Source: Macrostomum lignano
Lineage: Eukaryota
Assembly (NCBI GenBank): GCA_002269645.1
Contig: NIVC01003265.1
Location: 1 to 64,000 of the forward strand
Direction of reading: 5' to 3'
DNA length: 64,000 nucleotides
Under the pieces are notes generated by a model. It was not told the DNA's origin. It saw only the letters and a program-made list of their open reading frames with translations, and made no database searches. Made by a program: the position numbers and the translations under genes. Below are positions 1,314 through 20,036 of the stretch, in pieces; the first letter of the stretch is position 1; each line of letters begins with the position of its first letter.

Positions 1314-4300
1314 TTACAGGGCACCTTTGCTGGCTTTCTGAGCCATTTCATCGCACGACTTCACCAGCTTCACGAACACCTGGTCCAGCGACATCTGGTA
1401 GAAGGCCCAGTAGCTCACCCCCAGACGGCTCTGGTTGGCCGCCAGCCACCTCAGCGCGTCCGACAGGCTGCGCACTGCCGACTTCGGCACTGAGAACTGC
1501 ATGACCAGGCCCAGGCCGAGGTCCTCCTGCGTCTGCGCTCCTTTGAACTGCTCCAGCACCGCAGTCTTGATCGAATGTCTTCTCTGTTTTATCGCCGACT
1601 CGGTCACCGGCTCCAGCAGCAGGTCCAGCGTGTACGCGTCACCGTGGCTGCAGATGGGAGTAGAAAGTGTCAATGTGCAAAGGGGACAAAGTATTCTGCA
1701 TATTAACACATAAAATGGAATCTATAAAGCAGAGGAACTCTTTGTGTTCAACAGTTAGAAATGGCAACCATTCGGCACATTTGGAAATCAAAAGTCAGCT
1801 CACCGGCTCCTCAGCTGCTGCACGGTGCCCACCGAGATCATCCTGCCCTTGTTCATGATGCCGACCCGACTGCACAGAGCCTCGACCTCCTCCATGCTGT
1901 GAGTCGTGACCATGACAGACCTTTTCTTGTGCACCATGCGGCGGATGGCGCCCCAGATGAAGCGCTTGTTCTCGGGATCTACGCCGGTCGAGGCCTCGTC
2001 GATGACGATGAGCGCCGGGTCGCCCAGCAGAGCGATGGCGAGGCAGAGACGCCGCTTGCTGCCAGCCGACAGCTGGCCGGCCTCCGTGTTCCAGTGCTGT
2101 GCCAGGCCCAGACTCGTAATCAAACTGTTAGTCTGGCGCTCCGCCTCGATCGAGTTGAGACCGCGGATGTCCGCGTAGAAGCGGATGTGCTCGGCCACGG
2201 TGATGCTGTTGAACAGCGGGTTGTGCTGCGGGCAGTAGCCGATGGCGCCGATCTGAGCAGCCTCCCGGCTGAGCATCCACGTGTTCGAGTGCAGACGAAC
2301 CTTACAGACACCTTCAGTGGCGGCCTCCTCGCCGACAATCACCGACATGGAGGTGGACTTTCCGGCTCCGTTCGCGCCCAGCAGACCGAAGATCTCGTCA
2401 GTCATGGCTCCGTATGTGACTCCTCGAACTGCGTGAACTCCGTTTGCATAAGTCTTGCGCAAGTTCCGCACTTCCAGCACATTTCTCTTATTCAAAGGTG
2501 CTACAAGAACTCTTTCCGCTTCATTTCGAGCACCTTCGTCCATTTCGCTATTTGACTCGTACGTTGCATTGTCAAGAGCTCCGGAGCAGCAGACGCCAGT
2601 AAAAGTCACTCTGATTATGGAACTGTTCTCGGCAAGACAGATGATGCCGCTCAGGATCACAATGTGCACTGGCATGGCTAGCAGTGCGTAAAATATGGCC
2701 GGATTTTTGTTAATGCTTTCCATCAGACCGGGCAGTGCGGAGCCACTCGGAGAGTTATAGTATTCCCGTTTGTAAAACAAATAAGCGAGGCAGCTGTAGA
2801 TCAGCCCGAGCGGCGCTGCGGGAGGCACCAGCCAGACTAACAGCTGCAGAGCAATGGAGTTGCTGATATGTGTGATGGCAAGGGGCATAATCACCACGAA
2901 CATGTTGCAGAACACGGAGACGATGGTGCTCCTGGTCCGAGTGACGGCCGCTATGGCATAGATCGTCAGCAGGTTAGATACAATTCCAAAGATGTAAGCC
3001 GGAAGAAAAGCCATCAGGGTGAGATACGCCGATCTGTACGCCTCCGAAATCATTAAAAGAGCAACTGCAGACATGAAGCAGAGCGCATACTGAATCCAGT
3101 GCATGGCAAATGTGTTCATCCAATAGGCGAACAAGCCCATCCCGGTGGACATAAGATGGCTTCTCACTCTGCTGCTCATGTCTTCAATTGGATCGTTCAA
3201 ATAGGAGACGGGGAAAAGGCAGATGGCGTAGAAGAAGGCCTGCATGGAGATTCCAGTGCGTACAGACGCGCCCACGGGTCGAATAAAGGATAAGGCGGTC
3301 GTGTTCTCGACATCAGAAATTCCAAACACCCGAAATACTTTTGCCAGCGCCCTGCGGTATATATGAACAGCGGCACCCTGGGTGTCATCACTAATCAGTA
3401 CTCCAACAGTGACGGAGCGCTGTGTATCGGGTATGCTTTCCAACCATGACGAAGCATAATATAACACACAAGGCGGTAAGGAACCGTCTTTGTTTATCCA
3501 GCCATTGTACTTGAGATGGCGTAAAATTTCCTTCCTTGTAGTATCATTCGACAGAAACTCCTTCAGACTTTGGGCAGCGGGCTTGTAAACAATGATAGGA
3601 ATTTTGCCTTCCTCTGGATCGTGCAAAGCCAGAGATTCGCAAATTTTTATGTGCGACAGGCTGTCTGAGCTCCCATCAACTATGCAGGCGGTAGCCAGCG
3701 AGGCGTCGCCGAAGTCCGACTGCGAATCGCCGAGGCCGTGGTTAGCATGCCCATCTGGATTGTTTCCGCGTCATTCAGACTGCTTATCGATGTGTCCTTA
3801 AAAACAAGCGAGCCAGCGCATATGAGCGCCAACAGTGCCGTGGGCACCAGAAACCTGCTCATTAAACTGGACGTGACGCGTAGCTGCCGCTTGATGTTCA
3901 TGGAAAAAAGTACCAAAAACTGCTTCGTCACCGATGCGTAATGTAAATTTCGTTGGTGGAGCTTTGTGGGCTCTTTGTTTCCAGTGTCTTGAACTGACGC
4001 ACCCAAGTATTCTAAATGGTTCGGTGCCAAAAGAGTGCCCATCTTAAAGGCTTCGATAACTTCGTCGGATTCCATTCCACTAAGCCTCATAAAGATGTCG
4101 CCCAGAGATGCTTGCGACAGGCCAAAAGTCTCGACCTCGGTGCTGGTCTCCAGAACATGAACTGCTTCCGTTAAAATTGACGAATCCAAAGCTGGAACTT
4201 GCAGCCGAAGCTCGGTTTCTTCATGGCTTTTCACATGGACCTGCTTCAGCTTGGCCAGCAGCGACTCCGCGCCTGACTTGGACTTCAGCGACACATTCAG

Positions 4301-6544
4301 CGTGAAGCTGCAGCCGAACGCTCGCTTCAGAAACATCGAAGACCCAGCGCACACGATCTTGCCGCCGCACAGGAAGATCTTGCGGTCTGCCAGGATGTCC
4401 GCCTCGTCCATGAACTGCGTGCACAGGATGATGGAGCGGACGCTCTTCTCCTCCTGCAGCAGCTGCCACAGCTGCCGCCTCGACACCGGGTCCAGTCCGC
4501 TCGTTGGCTCGTCGAGGAACACAACGTCCGGGTCGCCCAGCAGAGCCAGGATCGTGCTCACCTTCCTCTTCTGACCGCCGCTCAGGTCGCAAGACAGCAC
4601 ATCCTCCTTGTCTCCCAGACCGAGTCTCTGCAGCATTCCGCGAGCTCTCTCCAGCTGGCTGGTGTCGCTGGCCGCCCTGCTGACCAGCGTGACTCGGATG
4701 CACTCCATCACGGTGAGCGAGTCGCAGAGGGCGTCAAACTGCGGACACTTGCTGATCCGACCTCTGAGCGACAGACGGAGCAGCGGGCTCGTCACCAGAC
4801 AGCCGCCGATGTGGGCCGTTCCCTCGTCTGGCAGCTCCTCGCCTGTAAGGACCTTGATGAGCGTCGACTTGCCAGCGCCGTTGTGTCCGATGAGAGCCGT
4901 GATCTGGCCTCGGTAAATGGTGCCTACAACACAATTTGGGAGGCATGTTTACAGGTACAGATATTTTCAACTCGTTAATACTGAGCGACCAGCTTTGCTA
5001 CTTACATGATAATTTGTTTAAAACAATCGGAGCTTCGGAGCAGCAAAGGCAGACGTTGCTGTAACTCTTGCTGAGCTCTTCAACAACAACAACAGGGTTG
5101 AGCCGCATCACAGGCTCGATGTGCGGTTCGCTTTCAGTAGCTTTCTTTGTTCCCACACTTTCATCTCGCAGGTTTCGAGGAAACCAGAACTCGGCCGTGA
5201 CTGGGTAGTAGGGCGCCAGGCAGAGTCCGTTGCCAGTCTTCAGAAGAAAGTCTAAGTACACCAGCAGCAGTATTTGAAGCAGAAGAGAAACCAAATTGGC
5301 TGCCAGAATGTTGGAGAAGCGCAAAGCGTCGTCTTCTCCGATGCTCATTTCAGTCCAAAGCTGCTCAACGGCAGAGTTCATTCGCCCAGCAACAAATTCC
5401 TTTGCGAACATTGGCGGGAAGAAATACAGCACGTAGGGCGCCTTTTTTGCCAAATAATCGCTGAATGAGAATGCCAAAACAAGGCCGACGTTAATTTTGA
5501 TCGCCACGATAGACACAAGCAGCATTGACGGCAGCAGCATCTCCAGAAGCAGCAATAGGGCCGACAGGTTAAGGCTGAAAAGAGTTACAAAAAAATACAT
5601 TTGAGCAATGGCTGCGGCTGAATAAAGCCCAGGACACTGCATAGCGTGGGACACCATGAATACTCCGGCGAACACGAGGCACTCGGTGAGCGTGAAGAGC
5701 CAGACAACAAGCCAGTAGGCAGACACGGACAGGCCGCATTGAAACTGCTGCTGCAGGAAGCCCTCAGATTTGAGAATGTGAACGCAGGAAACGGTGGAGA
5801 TGAGCAGGTAAAAAGTCACCCCAAAAGCTGCTAGTGAGACAGTAAAAGGTGTGCCATTTTCAGTGAGCCTGGACAGCTCGCCGCTATTGATCCAGTCGGC
5901 GCAAACCGAGTTCGGTAGGGATAAATTTTTTCTTCTCTCCGAATTCTCGGCTTGTTGAGGCTTCACCGACTGTCCAAAGTTGTGCACTTCAAACAGCTGC
6001 ACGTTTATCGCAGTTTCATTTCGCGGTCTCAAATGTGCTGACTGGACCATGGCCTGGTAGATAAAGGCGCACATGAGATGAGAATTCCCTTCGTTAAGAC
6101 AGTCCAGGACGTGTCGCGACTTCTCCGATTTGCTTGAGTACCGCAGATGCGCAACGACTGAGGCATCGGACTGATGAATGAGCCTCTCTCTGCAGTCGGT
6201 CTCCGCTCGGCAGTCCTCGATCCAGCTGCCGTCGCCGCTGGCCAGGATAAGGCTCGACGTCTTTTCCTCGTCCGAACGATCCAACAGGACTTTCACCTGC
6301 GCTGCCGCGAACTCTCGGGTGCCATAGAACACAATTTGGCGTCCATCTCCTGCGGTACGAGTTCGAGGTCGCATGCTCATTTGCCAGGGCAGCACGTACA
6401 GGTTGGAAATCAGCAGCAGGACCGGAACAACAATGAAGACATTCCGCCATGCCTTCAGCTTCAGTAGGAGCAGAAGCAGAAATCCAAACTGACGGATGCA
6501 GTTTGGAATGCTGGTCGATTGCTTGCACTCGACGCTCGGGTCAT
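1314..6544 (-). CDS. ABC transporter, subfamily A (full transporter, TMD-NBD-TMD-NBD, about 1,650-1,700 aa)
   Basis: Exons ~6544(start uncertain)-5006, 4923-1804 and 1647-1314; introns 5005-4924 (gtaagt..gtag) and 1803-1648 (gtgagc..gcag) are phase-consistent. NBD1: GHNGAGKST, LSGGQKRKV, VVFLDEPT. NBD2: GANGAGKST, LSAGSKRRL, IVIDEASTGVDP. C-terminus LRSRHGDAYTL...SLDQVF is typical of ABCA. One frameshift is needed at ~3766 and probably one at ~6503 if ATG 6544 is the start. Confidence 0.92.
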
Positions 6545-8095
6545 GGACGAGCTGTACTATGTGCTCTGGTGGTTCGCGTTCCAGCTTTGTTTCTCGGTCC
6601 AGGCAATATGTAGTAACACACTGCTACTAATTGTCAGCGAATTTGGTTTGCTTGCCTTTCCTATTTACCCCATCCAAGGACTACTGAACATAACAACTCA
6701 GGATGTTACACTCACGAATGGTGGAAATTCTAGAAAAGGCCGCTTGCTTCAGCTGTCTATGGCAATGAAGTCCCTTTTCAATAAAGCTGCGAACGCTTCA
6801 TATATCGCCACCTAATTACATCCGGCATAAAATTTTTGCCCTCGTGTTTTATAAATATATATTTGTCGCTACTCAGTATAAAACTACGAGTATAAAGCAA
6901 ACGTAGAAGGCTATAAAAAGTCGGAGCACACTCGTACGAGATATGCTGTTAAGTTTTTGTTCGAAAGAAACAGTTTTTTCGTTGAACCGCATTGAGAATC
7001 AAATACATTGATACTACTGACACTCGCAAAAATCTCAGTGACAGTCGCCAGGAACTTGAAATTTACTGTGTTCCTTCACATCCAGACAGGTTTCAGTTTG
7101 TGAAGCCTCGAAGTTTCGGAGTCTCTGCGCGTTTCCTTTAGCCAGCCTCCGAGACACTCGACACAGCTGATCAGGATGCAGCTAAACATCCGAAACATTC
7201 TCGAAGATGTTCTCAAACACAAGCGCGTAACTGTTAACACAGCGCTGCCCAGAGTCAAGAGGATGTGCACCAAGACTCAGTTGAAGACTCAGCTTCCCTC
7301 GAGACACTGGCATGGTGAACTCGCTACAAGCAGTCGAAGTATCCATACCAGGCAAGTTTGTTTCAATCGTTCGGTCGGCAGATTCTCTTTGTGACGCAAT
7401 GCAACCACAAATGTAGTAAAGAGAGGCTTTTTGCGCGATAGAAAGTCCAGCAACGGATGAAGGGTCGTTGGGTCGCGCATGGCTGCTGATTCGTTTTATC
7501 GGATGAGTCAGGAGGGAGCGAGGAGAGCCTGGAGAGATCAGGGCGAGTCAGGATTGAGCAGGGAGCAAGGGGAGTTAGGATGAATGAGTTAAGAGGGAGC
7601 AGTGTGAGAGTCAGAGGGAGCAAGGTAAATAATTTATAAACCTGTTAAGTGCTTTTAGCTCGTAGAACAGGGAAGATGAAGGCTGAAAGTATACTGCCTT
7701 CATTCTGTCACCATTGCGACTCCAGACCGCTACGGTGTCACAAGACAAGTCGTATTCCAAAAATTCATGTAATAGGCATGTAAGTAGTAACTTTAGTAAA
7801 AAATTGCTTGTATTTAGTTAGTTAGGGCTAGAGATTTACTTTGAGAATTCGTATGTGTATGTTAAGTATAAGATATAACCAACTCATCTTACTTTTCAGG
7901 TTTCAGGATCAAGTAAGCTAGTCTATAATAACTTGCTCAGCATGCATTCCAGATGCTATTTTTAGAAACCTACGCCATTACGCTATCGCACTTTACTCTA
8001 TGGTATAGTGTGTCTACTTCAGCAGTCTTGCAGCTTTCATTTGATATTGAATTATTTATTTCATTATCCGACGCTTGCCGTGTGAGTCCGACGGA

Positions 8096-8552
8096 ATGGT
8101 GCAACTGCAGCTTCTCCTGATGTTTCTCATTCTCTCAGACAGTTTTGGTGAGTCCTTGGTTTGATTGAATGATTTGCTAGCTTTTTTACGCTATTCCAAG
8201 AAATTGCCAGTCATTGATGATAGAAATTGCAAAACATGATTGATTAAATGAGGTATACAAGTTGTCACCAGATTCCAACGCGAGTTAAGAGTTTTGTTGC
8301 TGAAGAGGATCATGTGAACTTATGCTCATGCATCATGCTGCAATATGTCAAAAACTAAAGATTAAAGCCAGCTTGCACCTGTGCACCAACTACATTATAG
8401 TTTCGGAGGCCGCCGTCACGGACAAGACCATGTACTGCGCTCCGCTGGGCACTTCGTGCGACGACTTTTACGTTCGCTGCTGCGTGGGCCAGTGCAAATT
8501 CGCTTTTGTGTTTGACAATAAGCCAGTTTACATTTGCTCGAGACAAGACTAA
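8096..8552 (+). CDS. Secreted cystine-knot (ICK/knottin, conotoxin framework VI/VII-like) peptide precursor, 67 aa, 2 exons
   Basis: Exon 1 8096-8147 encodes signal-like MVQLQLLLMFLILSDSF+G, followed by donor gtgagt. Exon 2 8401-8552 follows acceptor cattatag; the phase-1 junction is in frame. Product: MVQLQLLLMFLILSDSFVSEAAVTDKTMYCAPLGTSCDDFYVRCCVGQCKFAFVFDNKPVYICSRQD*. Cys spacing is C-x6-C-x6-CC-x3-C-x13-C. Confidence 0.8.
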
Positions 8553-8576
8553 CCCTAACCCTAACCCTAATCCTAA
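8549..8576. repeat. Short interstitial telomere-like (CCCTAA)n tract
   Basis: ctaaccctaaccctaaccctaatcctaa; its first TAA is the stop codon of the knottin ORF. Confidence 0.75.
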
Positions 8577-8898
8577 TTAGTTTGTTAACCGAACAAAAGT
8601 TACACCATGAAATTATTATTCAATTATAGCATTGAAGTTTCAAGATCAGTGCAACAAGGCGTATCTTTTTGTTTATTTCACGAATCGTTCCAGGCATGTA
8701 GCAGACGGTAGGTAAGCAAAAAGCATGATGATATTTACATAAAAGAACAGCTGGAATCCAGCTGTTCTGTGGCCGACTTTAGCGCCAGAAATCAGTTGCG
8801 TTGGACGACTCGAGCGGAACTCGCAACTTGTACAAATTTAAAATGTCACAGCTGTAGTAGGAAAATGGTACAGTTTGGCGCACGTCGCTGCGAGGGAG

Positions 8899-8938
8899 AG
8901 CCAATCAGCAATGAGGAGGCCCGGAGGCGGGGCGGGGC
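8899..8938 (+). promoter_or_regulatory. CCAAT box plus GC box cluster (target gene unknown)
   Basis: AGCCAATCAG at 8899-8908 and GGGGCGGGGC at 8929-8938 match the NF-Y and Sp1 consensus; no linked start site identified. Confidence 0.25.
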
Positions 8939-9439
8939 AGGCCGGAGGAAGGGGTGGGGCAAGCCTAGAGTGGGGGTCGGGCAAGCCAGAGGTGGGTAGC
9001 AGGCCAGATGAGGGGTCGGGTAGCTGAGTGTCTGGCTGAGTGTCCAAGGGTGAGTATCGAGATGCGAGTGAGTGTCCATTGGTGAGTGTCCTCTACCGTG
9101 TGTGGTGACACGCAAGACAGAGTTTCAGTGTGATCGGTCAACGGGTAGAGGGTCCGATTGCTTGGAATTTCCGAGTAGAGTGGGGAAGAGATTCTATTGG
9201 TCGAGAAAGCATTTGAAGTGAAGTGATTGAAGTAAAGTAGCTCGTACTCATTTTTAGAATAGTGGGTTTGCCTTTTTGCCCAGCAAGCCGATGTCGACTT
9301 ACTTTGGGAATGCTGCACAGGAGCACTTGAAATTGGAATTCATTCATTTGGAATTCAGCAGTGCAGAGAGTGAGATGTTGGGAATATACAAAAACTAAAG
9401 GCCAATTGCATTTTGCATCGGCAGCGAGGTAAGTCTCAA

Positions 9440-10501
9440 CTACCCAGGCACTGTGCCTGCTTCACCGGAGCTCTCCGAAGCCGCAGTCGCCGCGGACCTG
9501 CCGTCTGCTGGCTCGTCGGCATCATAGCGCCGCCGCCTGCGCTGCTCCCTCCAGCCGGCGCAGGTGATGAACTCGCGAAACTTGGGCATGAAGATGAGGT
9601 AGAGCAGCGGATTGACGGCGCTGTTGAGGCTGAGCAGGAATGAGTCCACGCTGTCGAGGGCGCCTCGCCTCTCAATCGGCACTCCAACGGTGAAGAGCAG
9701 GAAGCTGATCGAGTCCGTGGCGAACAGGAGGACAAAGGCGCCGCTGGTGACGCAGGTCATGAGGGTCAGTCGTTTGGTTGGGCCGTCCATTCTGCTGCCG
9801 CGGCTGCACATCTCGGCCTGCGTCTTGCTGGAACGCAGGAACGTTCGCAGGATCACCAAGTACATGCTGATGGACAGGACTGTTGGCAAAATCCAAAACA
9901 GAATCACGTAGCTGATTCCAAAGGCGATCGCCATCTGCTGGTTTTCTCGGCTAAACTCGCAATGCTTCCACACGCCAGGTTCGGCGGTTGTATTCACTGA
10001 TGTGCTGTTGCTAAGCAACGGCGAATCGTCCGGTGTCTTCACCAGTATCATCGCCAGGAAGCAGAAGGGCACCTGCACAAAGAATGGGGCTGCCAGCACG
10101 GCCGCAATGAAGCAGCCCGCAAGCAGGCACTGGTGACTCTTGTACCAGCTGTGCGCGGAGAGACAGCAGCAGCGCTCAACGGCCAGGCATGCGAGGTTGT
10201 AGACACTCATGCACACCAGAGCCCAGTGGAAAATCTCGCTGTAGGCCAGCTTGCAGTAGGCCTCCCAAATCGAGTCGGGAAGAGACTGCGATGGCAGCGG
10301 GAAGAACTCAAAGTACTGAAGGTTAAGAAGATTGAGCAGCATCTGGAGCGAGTCGATGACCGCTTGACTGCGGAGCAGATGCGAGCAAAGCGGCTTGCCA
10401 ATCTTGTGCCGGACGCCGAACACCAGAAATGTGATGTTGAGCACCAGAGCCGGCACCAGCAGGACGCTGAGAACCACTCGGAGAACGGATGTGGCATCCA
10501 T
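9440..10501 (-). CDS. Intronless class A (rhodopsin-like) orphan GPCR, 353 aa from the first ATG
   Basis: Seven hydrophobic segments. TM3 ends LAVERC (DRY variant), TM5 FWILP...Y, TM7 NSAVNPLLY followed by helix 8 PKFREF. The track ORF starts at a TTG; the first ATG (MDATS) is at 10501. Confidence 0.9.
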   Translation of the reverse strand: MDATSVLRVVLSVLLVPALVLNITFLVFGVRHKIGKPLCSHLLRSQAVIDSLQMLLNLLNLQYFEFFPLPSQSLPDSIWEAYCKLAYSEIFHWALVCMSVYNLACLAVERCCCLSAHSWYKSHQCLLAGCFIAAVLAAPFFVQVPFCFLAMILVKTPDDSPLLSNSTSVNTTAEPGVWKHCEFSRENQQMAIAFGISYVILFWILPTVLSISMYLVILRTFLRSSKTQAEMCSRGSRMDGPTKRLTLMTCVTSGAFVLLFATDSISFLLFTVGVPIERRGALDSVDSFLLSLNSAVNPLLYLIFMPKFREFITCAGWREQRRRRRYDADEPADGRSAATAASESSGEAGTVPG

Positions 10502-11339
10502 CTTTAGAGCGCGCGTTCGTCTACTTAGAAAGCGTATAACGAGTGCCAAATATTGATGTTGCCAAATATTTACAGTATTGATGACTAATTCTTGTCGCCA
10601 TGAAGGTAGACAGTTTACCTACTAACTAATTTCAAGAGTGAGGATGCTGTCTTTCGAAAATTGTTTTTCTTAATACTCGATGCACGGTGGTATGTTTTAC
10701 TTTGAGTCCGTCTAGCAAGCAGAGACTAAATATATGCGGTGCAGAAGGGTTTCTAACCGTGCTCATCGCACAGAAGATGCTCAGTGCAGCCTTTCAAGAA
10801 CAATTTACTCAGCTCAAATAAATATTCGCTGCGTGCGTCTTGCCCCGTCCCGTTGAAACACAGAAGCGAAGTTTCTCTTGCCTCGCGTATACGTTGGAGC
10901 ATTGCGGTGCACAATGGCTACTATTGAGCTGGACGAGCTAGCTGGCAGAAGCTACATGCCTGACACTACTAGCAGTAGCATTATTTGTAGCAGACATCAA
11001 ATTTCCACACTACTGTGAGGACCACTAGAAGAAGTGGAACGGGACTTGTCGCTTCTTGGAATCCGTTAAAAGTTTCAAGTTTCCAAAGAAAAATGCAAAC
11101 TAAGAAGAGTTTATTTCTGCTTCAAAGGCTCGTTCTCATCGCCATAAAATTGGCCTTATTAGACGGCGATGTGAACGAGTAAAACTTTGCCTCCACTGAC
11201 AACCCGACAAAGAACACATAACAAGGGACAAGGATCAAGGATCTAGGGACAAGGCTCTAGTATCAAAAACAATAACATGAATCGTTTCTTTGTATTGTCT
11301 CTAATACTGTCACACAGAGATGAACTCTTGTTTATCTAA

Positions 11340-13616: not shown

Positions 13617-13704
13617 TGCCTCTGAGCCAAGGACAGCAAACCAGATACTCCTGTTTTCCTCTACTTCCAAGTGATTGCTCTACGCCACCCGACTATCAAT
13701 AGCT

Positions 13705-14022
13705 ATGGAGAAGCCTACCTGCATCAATTGCAAGCGCGATTGCGAGGCCTGCGAGTGCGAGACTTGCATCTGCGAGAAATGCGAGTGCGACACCTGCGAG
13801 TGCGACCATTGCGAGTGCGACAACTGCGAGTGCGAGACCTGCGACTGCACGGACGGTACCTGCAAGTGCGGCCAAAGCAAGTGCAGCAATGCCACCTGCA
13901 AGAATGCCACGTGCAAGATCAACGACCGTAGGACCTGCGTGTGCAAGACCTGTGTGTGCAAGACCTGCGTGTGCAAGACCTGCAAGTGCGAGACCTGCGT
14001 GTGCTGCAAGACATGCAAGTGA
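13705..14022 (+). CDS. Metallothionein-like protein, 105 aa, 34 Cys, intronless
   Basis: MEKPTCINCKRDCEACECETCICEKCECDTCECDHCECDNCECETCDCTDGTCKCGQSKCSNATCKNATCKINDRRTCVCKTCVCKTCVCKTCKCETCVCCKTCK*: no aromatic residues, CxC-xx pentapeptide repeats, and TATA plus MRE upstream. Confidence 0.85.
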   Translation: MEKPTCINCKRDCEACECETCICEKCECDTCECDHCECDNCECETCDCTDGTCKCGQSKCSNATCKNATCKINDRRTCVCKTCVCKTCVCKTCKCETCVCCKTCK

Positions 14023-18025: not shown

Positions 18026-18176
18026 TCATCAAATAGCAGTTATCCTCCACTGATACGGCCCCGAATTTGAATTTTCTGTTTATCTATAATTGTATTAGAA
18101 TAGCATATCTATACAATAAAAACTGATTATCTGATATCGGAGCTTAAATAGTTTTTGATCAAGAAATATCATTAAA

Positions 18177-20036
18177 ATGGCAGGTGCATACCCATGTGTA
18201 GTGTGTGTACAGCCTGTTGTCAATGGAGAAGAAGCCATTGAGTGCTCGCAGTGTAGCGAATGGCAGCATCGTGCGTGTAACAGTCGCGTTACACCGGAGC
18301 AGTACGCTGCGATGAAACGTGTACGCGAGTTTTTCTGGCTGTGCAACCGATGCCTTAGGCCAACTACAGGTGTGCCTTCATCTGCACCCTCAGCTGCCCC
18401 AGCAGCTACTGTGCCACCAACCTTTCCAGGATCAGGACCAGGTGGTGAGCCTATTGACCTAGAGGAGCCATTGCTTCCAGTCCCTCATGTAGAAGTGGAA
18501 GAGAGGTTTTTATTTCAGTATCCCGATTTCGCTGACGCTGAACCTGTGCTCGAAGAATCAATTCACGAGCCTCCAGCAGAGTTGGCGCCGCCTCGTAGCC
18601 CACCTCCGCAGGCTTTTGAGCATTTTCCAGGTGCTGGATTCAGCCACGGCAAAGACTTGCTGGTGCAGTACGTCAGGCGTGATCTTGGCCGCTTGATGCA
18701 TGTCAAGAGCCGGCGAAACGGCAACACTTACTACCGTTGCAACAAAACTGCACCGAAATGCCTGGGCTCAGCCGTCAAGCGACAAGACGGAACCATTGAA
18801 GCCTTGAAAGAGCACACCTGCGATCCAGTCGATCAGCCAGTTAAAAAACGACGTATTGCAGCTCAGGTAAAAGCGGAAGCAAAGCGAGCGCCATTCAAAT
18901 CTGCTCGCATCATCGCTGAGGAGAAAGTAAGAGAGCTCCCCCAAGAAGTGCAGGCAGTGATTAATATAGATTCCTTAAGTCGCAATGCTAATTATTCTCG
19001 TAAAAAAAGCCGCCCCGCGGAGCCAGCTAACATCCATTTTCAGGTTGATCCCGAGCACGTGCCCCCAGAGTTCCATTTGCAGGACGTTACTGTGCCAGAG
19101 ACAAATGGACGGCACTTTGTCTTCATGTCTGCGACACAACGGGAGATCCTGTCCACACGACGCATTCTGCACTGCGATGGCACATTCGGCATTGTCAAGG
19201 CGCCTTTCATGCAGCTGTACAGCCTTCATGGAGCCATTCGCTGCAACAATCAAGAGCGTCTGGTACCACTGGCATTCTTTCTGATGTCAGGTAAGGCTCA
19301 GGCTGACTACCAAGCCTGCTTCCGGCAGGTATGGGAGTTGACTGGTAATGCACCTGTCCAATTTATCTGCGACTTTGAGTCGGCCGCCTGGCAAGCCATT
19401 CGGCTAGTTTATCCAGCAGCCCAAGTTCGTGGCTGCTTTTTTCATTACTGCCAGGCTGTTTTCAGGCGAGTCCAGTCTCTTGGATTGCAGGTGCAGTATG
19501 CGACTTCCCCTGCGGTAAAGTTATTAGTACGCATGCTGCTTTCGATTCCTTGTCTGCCGGCTCCTTGCATGCTAGATGGCCTTGCAGCCTGCACTGCAAT
19601 GGCAGGAGAGAATCAGCGCCTTCTAGAGCTAACGGAATACGTGCGTGCAACCTGGCTACAGCACCCTGTGTGGGACCGGGATGCCATTTGCGTCTTTGAG
19701 CGGTTCACAAGGACGAACAATGCCGTGGAGGCTTGGCACGCGCAGCTCAACAAGCGTGGAGAGAAAGCGCTTAATTTCTATCTTCTGCTGACCCTGCTTC
19801 AGCGTGATGCAGAGCGGGTGCAACGTCTGCTGCAGCAAGTTCATCAAGGCCAAGCTGTCACGCACCACCAGCAAGTACATGCTAGGTACGCGCGAGTGAA
19901 TGTCTGCTTTGAGACATTCTGCCGACACCTGAGAGAGGGCACTATGTCGATTGCAGCATTTCTCCGGGCCTGCAGCCATATTCATGCGCAACCTGGATGG
20001 CAGCAAGAGGGCGAGAATGATGCGCAGCAGAATTGA
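18177..20036 (+). CDS. MULE transposase with N-terminal PHD finger and FLYWCH/WRKY-like Zn finger, 619 aa
   Basis: PHD C4HC3: CVVC...IECSQCSEWQHRAC...FWLCNRC. Zn-finger-like YYRCNKTAPKC...KEHTC. Catalytic motifs LHCDGTF (D), ICDFE (D), GCFFHYCQA (CxxH) and RTNNAVEAWH (E). Single uninterrupted ORF. Confidence 0.93.
   Translation: MAGAYPCVVCVQPVVNGEEAIECSQCSEWQHRACNSRVTPEQYAAMKRVREFFWLCNRCLRPTTGVPSSAPSAAPAATVPPTFPGSGPGGEPIDLEEPLLPVPHVEVEERFLFQYPDFADAEPVLEESIHEPPAELAPPRSPPPQAFEHFPGAGFSHGKDLLVQYVRRDLGRLMHVKSRRNGNTYYRCNKTAPKCLGSAVKRQDGTIEALKEHTCDPVDQPVKKRRIAAQVKAEAKRAPFKSARIIAEEKVRELPQEVQAVINIDSLSRNANYSRKKSRPAEPANIHFQVDPEHVPPEFHLQDVTVPETNGRHFVFMSATQREILSTRRILHCDGTFGIVKAPFMQLYSLHGAIRCNNQERLVPLAFFLMSGKAQADYQACFRQVWELTGNAPVQFICDFESAAWQAIRLVYPAAQVRGCFFHYCQAVFRRVQSLGLQVQYATSPAVKLLVRMLLSIPCLPAPCMLDGLAACTAMAGENQRLLELTEYVRATWLQHPVWDRDAICVFERFTRTNNAVEAWHAQLNKRGEKALNFYLLLTLLQRDAERVQRLLQQVHQGQAVTHHQQVHARYARVNVCFETFCRHLREGTMSIAAFLRACSHIHAQPGWQQEGENDAQQN

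Follow-up and report, generated by a model that had tools for sequence, protein, structure and literature searches.

Mlig014969 of the flatworm Macrostomum lignano, a two-exon gene for a small, probably secreted six-cysteine peptide with conotoxin-like spacing

Introduction

Among the described peptides with six cysteines in the order C-C-CC-C-C, those of the conotoxin O-superfamily (framework VI/VII), represented here by δ-conotoxin Am2766, are made by cone snails as small secreted precursors with a conserved leader and a propeptide that carries a dibasic site. The same cysteine order follows a signal peptide in the knottin-like CRP-I peptides of Mytilus, a non-venomous spiralian; their cysteine array lies in exon 4, a KR/RR propeptide site is conserved, and the genes form a large family with presence/absence variation (PMC10138031). 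Flatworms possess small secreted peptides of the Pfam family UPF0506 (PF11703), which share the C-C-CC-C-C core and have a long last loop. A paper on the Schistocephalus secretome describes UPF0506 as having a knottin fold and an undefined function and as being found generally in Schistosoma (PMC8400842).

Here we analyse a gene of the free-living flatworm Macrostomum lignano whose product has the same order of cysteines. It lies in what we call the window, the whole stretch of 64,000 nucleotides that was analysed (contig C3265, bases 1–64000); the genome searched was the 764-Mb assembly in 5,269 contigs. With Am2766 the product has in common the loop lengths 6-6-0-3, the residues G, SCD, F, CCVG and F, a hydrophobic character and a small, putatively secreted precursor. 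It differs by a last loop of 13 residues instead of four, by the absence of the conserved leader and of a propeptide with a dibasic site, and by its host. As judged from the sequences, convergence on a common scaffold, and not conotoxin homology, is the best explanation for the likeness to Am2766. From the CRP-I genes as described it differs in having only two exons and in lacking both a dibasic site and paralogs. With UPF0506 it has in common the flatworm host, the small and putatively secreted product, the cysteine core and the long last loop, and the M. lignano members of UPF0506 or their sub-threshold relatives are likewise two-exon genes with a phase-1 intron; it differs from them in being solitary, at a separate locus between an ABC transporter and a GPCR gene, and in lacking a match to the family model (see below). 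Our literature search returned no paper that pairs Macrostomum with knottin. One Macrostomum paper mentions conotoxin; its subject is chemosensory GPCRs and not peptide toxins.

Results

Gene structure and annotation

The gene lies by itself, on the plus strand, in a 2.8-kb gap between two minus-strand genes (Table 1). The nearest in-frame stop upstream of its start codon is at 8048, and a putative TATA-like element (TATAATAA) is located at 7924–7931. Exon 1 ends in the donor TTTG/GTGAGT, the acceptor is TTATAG/TT at 8400/8401, and the spliced product is a precursor of 67 amino acids, MVQLQLLLMFLILSDSFVSEAAVTDKTMYCAPLGTSCDDFYVRCCVGQCKFAFVFDNKPVYICSRQD. Its six cysteines (residues 30, 37, 44, 45, 49 and 63) are spaced C-x6-C-x6-CC-x3-C-x13-C, and the hydrophobic stretch FAFVF occupies residues 51–55. 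An earlier note on this DNA had proposed a two-exon gene with a phase-1 intron separating the leader from the mature part, and a product of 67 residues with framework VI/VII-type spacing. Both exons and the intron phase were found in the sequence, and length and spacing were re-derived from it with an exact match. The fragment without signal peptide in the list of open reading frames, which the note had mentioned, is the unspliced stop-to-stop frame of 82 amino acids at 8304–8552.

Table 1. Coordinates of the peptide gene, its neighbours and knottin-like exons elsewhere in the genome (positions without contig name are those of the window)
Feature	Position	Strand	Description
Exon 1	8096–8147	+	ATG at 8096; 52 nt = 17 codons + 1 base; encodes MVQLQLLLMFLILSDSF plus base 1 of codon 18
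Intron	8148–8400	+	253 nt, GT..AG, phase 1
Exon 2	8401–8552	+	152 nt; residues 18–67 and TAA (8550–8552); mature peptide
Putative inhibitor-cystine-knot domain	8436–8537	+	six-cysteine core C30–C63, CAPLGTSCDDFYVRCCVGQCKFAFVFDNKPVYIC; matched by motif regular expression and genome pattern search
Telomere-like hexamer repeat	8549–8576	.	CTAACC x4.7 = CCCTAA/TTAGGG; Tandem Repeats Finder
ABC transporter	~1800–6623	-	open frames; two ABC_tran cassettes, ABC-2 membrane domain
Rhodopsin-family 7TM GPCR	9440–10618	-	3' end 0.9 kb from the stop codon of the peptide gene
Gene D	C107:351600–354700 (C107:353107)	-	homeologs on C2381, C740 and C3041; four copies
Knottin-like exon cluster	C2381 ~90 kb and ~99 kb (tandem duplicate); C107 ~333.7 kb; C740 ~217.8 kb		

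By contrast, the statement that the gene is unannotated did not hold. The exact 67-residue product is present in GenBank under four accessions (PAA48689.1, PAA52302.1, PAA54461.1 and PAA86134.1) and in UniRef (A0A267DJH6), where it has no assigned function; its GenBank name is hypothetical protein BOX15_Mlig014969g3/g5. The GenBank annotation of this assembly (Mlig_3_7) was derived solely from RNA-seq transcript assemblies (StringTie/TACO and the TBONE pipeline, followed by TransDecoder; PMC5730564). Because the coding sequence requires position 8147 to be joined to 8401, the splice junction thus has indirect transcript support.

The base composition of the locus shifts at the exon borders, with a GC content of 0.53 in exon 2, 0.37 in the intron and 0.36–0.40 in intron plus flanks. 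GC at third codon positions (GC3) is 0.66 in the coding sequence, compared with 0.61–0.73 in four long open frames of the neighbouring ABC transporter and GPCR genes. The cysteine motif by itself is not rare, as a relaxed regular expression for it matched about 0.15 times per shuffled 64-kb window. However, the joint occurrence of phase-correct consensus splice sites, a hydrophobic leader, gene-like GC3, intact copies and a transcript-derived protein is far beyond chance. A reading of the locus as non-coding RNA was discarded, the region 6600–9500 having no match in Rfam.

Leader and mature peptide

The N-terminus of the precursor is signal-like, as had been claimed in the earlier note. It contains a stretch of ten hydrophobic residues with the core LLLMFLIL (Kyte-Doolittle mean 3.0–3.5), and small residues at positions -3 and -1 mark, by a heuristic test, two candidate cleavage sites, after S16 (SDS/F) or A21 (SEA/A). 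An AF2 model of the precursor places a helix at residues 3–20. The n-region of the leader has no basic residue, a trait found also in the annotated knottin-like protein Mlig024546g1 (MSGWLMLLLLGLSVSS...). A phase-1 intron soon after the signal peptide is common in secreted proteins generally. Neither a dibasic propeptide site nor a C-terminal amidation signal was found in the precursor, in which a single lysine, K26, stands between the leader and the first cysteine. Cleavage at the candidate sites would leave a near-neutral mature peptide of 46–51 residues with a pI of 5–6.2. This charge makes a membrane-lytic role unlikely, and the reading as a classic cationic antimicrobial peptide was set aside for the same reason.

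Copies in the genome

Five near-identical copies of the locus are present in the assembly, on contigs C292, C1863, C2901, C3265 and C4080. Their collinearity extends for 15 kb or more, at 96–99.6% identity, which rules out a dispersed element or transposon cargo. Redundancy of this kind is known for the neopolyploid DV1 line (PMC5730564), and the five copies are homeologs or haplotigs of the neopolyploid and not a gene family. Four of the five encode the identical protein, consistent with the four GenBank accessions, and exon 2 is 100% identical in all of them. The sole exon substitution among the copies, G8101T in C292, is synonymous, whereas the intron tolerates a 1-nt indel at 8349 and, in C292, a deletion of 42 bp, neither of which affects the spliced coding sequence. 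In the copy on C1863 (region of 221365) exon 1 has a frame-breaking 1-nt deletion equivalent to window position 8142; this copy is either a pseudogenised or decaying homeolog or carries a long-read indel error of the assembly.

No paralogs beyond the five copies were detected when all six frames of the genome were searched with the protein encoded by exon 2, and a DNA search of the genome with the 5' UTR, exon 1 and the beginning of the intron matched only these copies. Since searches with the leader exon and with exon 2 both returned these five alone, a superfamily with a common leader, in the manner of conotoxins, is not present, and close paralogs or a family built on a conserved leader exon were dismissed as candidates.

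Neighbourhood

Within the 64-kb window no other knottin-like open reading frame was found. The telomere-like repeat listed in Table 1, an interstitial one, starts within the TAA of the peptide gene and continues as the first part of the 3' UTR in all five copies; G-rich tandem repeats of 22 nt follow just downstream of the gene (8917–8996). At the start of the contig (1–502) there is a long microsatellite-like array of AATC type which translates as NQSINQSI... An open frame of 115 amino acids on the plus strand (13675–14022) is extremely rich in C-x-C (MEKPTCINCKRDCEACECETCICEKCECDTCECDHCECDNCECETCDC...KTCVCKTCVCKTCKCETCVCCKTCK) and looks metallothionein-like, with no match in Pfam; it could be a gene for a metal-binding peptide or a translated tandem repeat. 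In another plus-strand frame (18159–20036; 625 amino acids) a PHD finger is combined with a MULE transposase domain; this Mutator-like transposase is domesticated or belongs to an intact element.

Fold of the six-cysteine core

When the protein was compared by phmmer with the sequences of solved structures in the PDB, the three relevant matches were all inhibitor-cystine-knot (ICK) peptides with loops 6-6-0-3, the best being Am2766 (E=0.0094, 19.7 bits); p28/p21 was also found. The ICK-type likeness put forward in the earlier note is thus borne out by the best matches of known structure. Not only the loop lengths but also the conserved glycine positions of solved ICK peptides recur in the window peptide. 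Seven of 19 non-cysteine positions are identical to Am2766, for which shuffling of loop residues gave a P of about 1e-4; this value applies to one comparison and, because many ICK sequences were compared, is suggestive only. In Pfam neither the precursor nor the mature peptide found a match at E≤10, and a phmmer search of 1.84 billion representative proteins returned the query itself as the sole match.

Structure prediction by AF2 without alignment gave a model of the full precursor (pLDDT 57.8) that was too poor for a fold search, and a mature-only model was therefore used. For the 43-residue mature part the best model reached a pLDDT of 71.4 and the other four of five 55–60. It contains a hairpin between Cys V and Cys VI (CKFAFVF-DN-KPVYIC, pLDDT 78–85) and a bridge at S36, just before Cys II, while the N-terminal half has a pLDDT of 63–64. 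The predicted hairpin, together with the predicted bridge before Cys II, would correspond to the canonical ICK sheet. Since the hairpin includes FAFVF, this segment is predicted to be a strand; of the hydrophobic FAFVF loop described in the earlier note, the residues are present as stated and their designation as a loop is at odds with the model. A Foldseek search of the PDB with the mature model had as its top match the double-ICK toxin φ-Xibalbin3-Xt3a of a remipede (7rz3), which differs from the window peptide in being a tandem double domain; with E=4.7, a probability of 0.08 and a TM of 0.38 this match lacks significance, and the power of such a search is low at about 40 residues. An insulin-like reading suggested by the CC-x3-C motif was rejected, as spacings of 6 and 6 between the cysteines do not agree with those of insulin B-chain and C-peptide.

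Comparison with conotoxins and with UPF0506

The Pfam model Conotoxin (PF02950, cut-off 25.1 bits), which spans signal and pro region, matched neither the precursor nor the mature peptide at E≤10, and the locus was absent from a scan of the whole genome with this model. The single genomic match above the cut-off and those related to it sit in tandem-repeat sequence and were discarded; several sub-threshold matches are knottin-like exons of the type found on contig C107 (see below). As the precursor also has no leader like that of the O-superfamily and no dibasic propeptide site, the gene is not a member of the conotoxin family.

A genome scan with the bare cysteine pattern produced 8,520 matches, in which TGY-rich simple repeats prevailed to such an extent that two conserved glycine positions were added, which made the pattern usable. 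The extended pattern, C-x3-G-x2-C-x6-CC-x-G-x-C, had 93 matches in the genome, nearly all of them simple repeats. Only two matches were both non-repetitive and free of in-frame stops, namely the window gene and a gene on contig C107 that we call gene D (Table 1). The terminal exon of gene D, DSASTCLRDRCKATGTECAQSDSDCCSGICSMVAIRNRKKVFRCA followed by a stop codon, has the loop lengths 6-6-0-3-13 exactly as the window gene. It is preceded by a phase-1 acceptor and, about 680 nt upstream, by a candidate leader exon (MRLLFFLFCLLVII, followed by A/GTAAGT). Gene D is missing from a profile search of the protein collection and may be unannotated.

Further knottin-like exons are located about 20 kb from gene D on the same contigs. 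One cluster exon (..ACPATEPCLVNGVSCWSGKDCCSHYCRVLKAWPNLTFTAECT) passes the Pfam cut-off for UPF0506 with 25.4–27.8 bits, and another (..CSSSKSCSEGGTRCWSGKDCCSGYCRVLEVKKDRTILAECDSCEP) is sub-threshold for that family. On the opposite strand in the cluster lies Mlig024546g1 (BOX15_Mlig024546g1), an annotated gene for a protein of 70 amino acids with a signal exon, a phase-1 intron and a cysteine exon. The order of signal exon, phase-1 intron and terminal cysteine exon is found in two genes of this set, C and D, and the cluster genes have the common core C-x6/8-C-x5/6-CC-x3-C-x13/14-C. The strongest UPF0506 match in the genome is at C12:836573 (31.5 bits, three copies); all passing M. lignano exons score between 25.4 and 31.5 bits, compared with the curated cut-off of 23.2 bits. 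Given these members and the description of UPF0506 as a knottin family, knottin-like secreted peptides of flatworms are already on record. The hidden small-peptide family suggested in the earlier note is only loosely substantiated: apart from the five copies no paralog of the window gene could be detected, and other knottin-like genes of the same architecture, some of them UPF0506, do exist in the genome.

Discussion

Mlig014969 is a real, transcribed two-exon gene for a 67-residue precursor, and with high probability its product is a genuine small, secreted, cysteine-rich peptide. The account that we favour, with moderate confidence as a whole, is that of a secreted and probably knotted orphan peptide which acts extracellularly. 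After a single splice, the leader (residues 1 to about 16–21) would direct import into the ER and be removed after S16 or A21. The remaining residues, about 46–51 in number, would be locked by three disulfides, most likely those of an ICK (C30–C45, C37–C49 and C44–C63), and the long hydrophobic β-hairpin K50–I62, which includes FAFVF, would project from the knot and probably serve as the surface for binding. If the exported peptide acts like other knottins, it may bind an extracellular target such as an ion channel, a receptor, a protease or a membrane, and this target may belong to another organism or to the mating partner.

Two alternatives concern the nature of the product. The locus could be transcribed yet non-coding or non-functional, with a short ORF that TransDecoder called by chance. 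A length of only 67 residues, the lack of homologs, the deletion in exon 1 of one of the five copies and a similarity among the copies too close for selection to be measured would be compatible with such an error. We nevertheless consider it very improbable, since a leader, phase-correct splice sites, the classical six-cysteine spacing and gene-like GC3 coincide in one locus, since indels gather in the intron while the coding sequence is spared in four copies, and since analogous knottin-like genes occur elsewhere in the M. lignano genome; the indel in C1863, moreover, may stem from long-read assembly. If the product is accepted as a secreted peptide with three disulfides, it might still be non-knotted, such as a disulfide-directed hairpin that has an additional bridge or a peptide of other connectivity, and its spacing a mere look-alike. 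The length of the last loop, more than three times that of Am2766 (alignment A2), the ill-defined N-terminal half of the AF2 model and the lack of a significant ICK match in Foldseek speak for such an arrangement. Long last loops, however, are also present in the UPF0506-like genes of M. lignano, the other loops and the glycine positions are those of solved ICK peptides, and both the modelled hairpin and the modelled bridge before Cys II would match the canonical ICK sheet. We thus regard a non-knotted peptide as unlikely and a knotted ICK fold, as far as the models allow, as the more probable arrangement.

The other two alternatives concern the kinship and the role of the peptide. Instead of being an independent orphan, the window gene might be a highly diverged and dispersed member of UPF0506 or of a broader ICK-like family of M. 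lignano which is clustered on contig C107. This is compatible with the M. lignano exons that exceed the Pfam cut-off (31.5, about 27 and 25.4 bits), with the core common to the cluster genes and the identical loop lengths of gene D, and with the exon layout of genes C and D, although phase-1 introns after signal peptides are so widespread that this layout says little about kinship. In hhalign, a profile of four cluster genes aligned with the window protein over the whole core at E=0.0012, yet with a probability of only 19.6%. When loops were shuffled with the two pattern-forced glycines held fixed, the similarity to gene D beyond the cysteines was not significant (P=0.07). Furthermore, PF11703 did not match the window peptide at E≤10 in hmmscan, nor was the locus among the matches of the genome scan. 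On balance, descent from that family appears rather unlikely, and at the level of sequence the gene is probably a lineage-restricted orphan. As to its role, the peptide might be an endogenous signal or a reproductive product of seminal fluid or glands and not a defensive toxin or antimicrobial. Some ICK peptides, agouti among them, are receptor ligands, which lends this idea some plausibility, as does the near-neutral or acidic mature peptide, which is not AMP-like. Secreted reproductive proteins that are small and lineage-specific are numerous in M. lignano (Weber et al. 2018; PMC5977470). The gene for the rhodopsin-type GPCR is only 0.9 kb further downstream, a proximity that we treat for now as a coincidence. 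On the other hand, neither the identifier Mlig014969 nor the sequence occurs in the text-form supplementary files of the seminal-fluid screen, and the M. lignano literature searched gave no expression site or phenotype for the gene, whose identifier occurs neither in the main texts nor in the supplements examined. A signalling or reproductive function in place of a defensive one is judged unlikely.

Returning to the secreted orphan peptide that we favour, it may have a role in defence, feeding, reproduction or signalling. A toxin-like action on an ion channel seems doubtful. M. lignano is not known to be venomous.

Part of what is described here was known before: Mlig014969 has an entry in GenBank as hypothetical protein, and peptides of the knottin type have already been described from flatworms. 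What is added is a hypothesis on the function of a single small gene and not a new kind of system. A bolder view, to which we give little credence, is that M. lignano, free-living and non-venomous, bears a set of conotoxin-like knottins, made up of the orphan, the C107 cluster with its partly unannotated genes and the members of UPF0506. These would be an arsenal, specific to the lineage, of ligands of ion channels or receptors for defence, for control of prey or microbes, or for sexual conflict; owing to a hydrophobic hairpin of unusual length, the window peptide would then represent a new pharmacological subtype. Should the peptide prove to be a true knottin, a scaffold of value to pharmacology would gain a sequence orphan. 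M. lignano is experimentally tractable, with transgenesis established (PMC5730564), and a true knottin in this animal would tie the UPF0506 peptides known from parasitic flatworms to a free-living model that allows tests of what they do.
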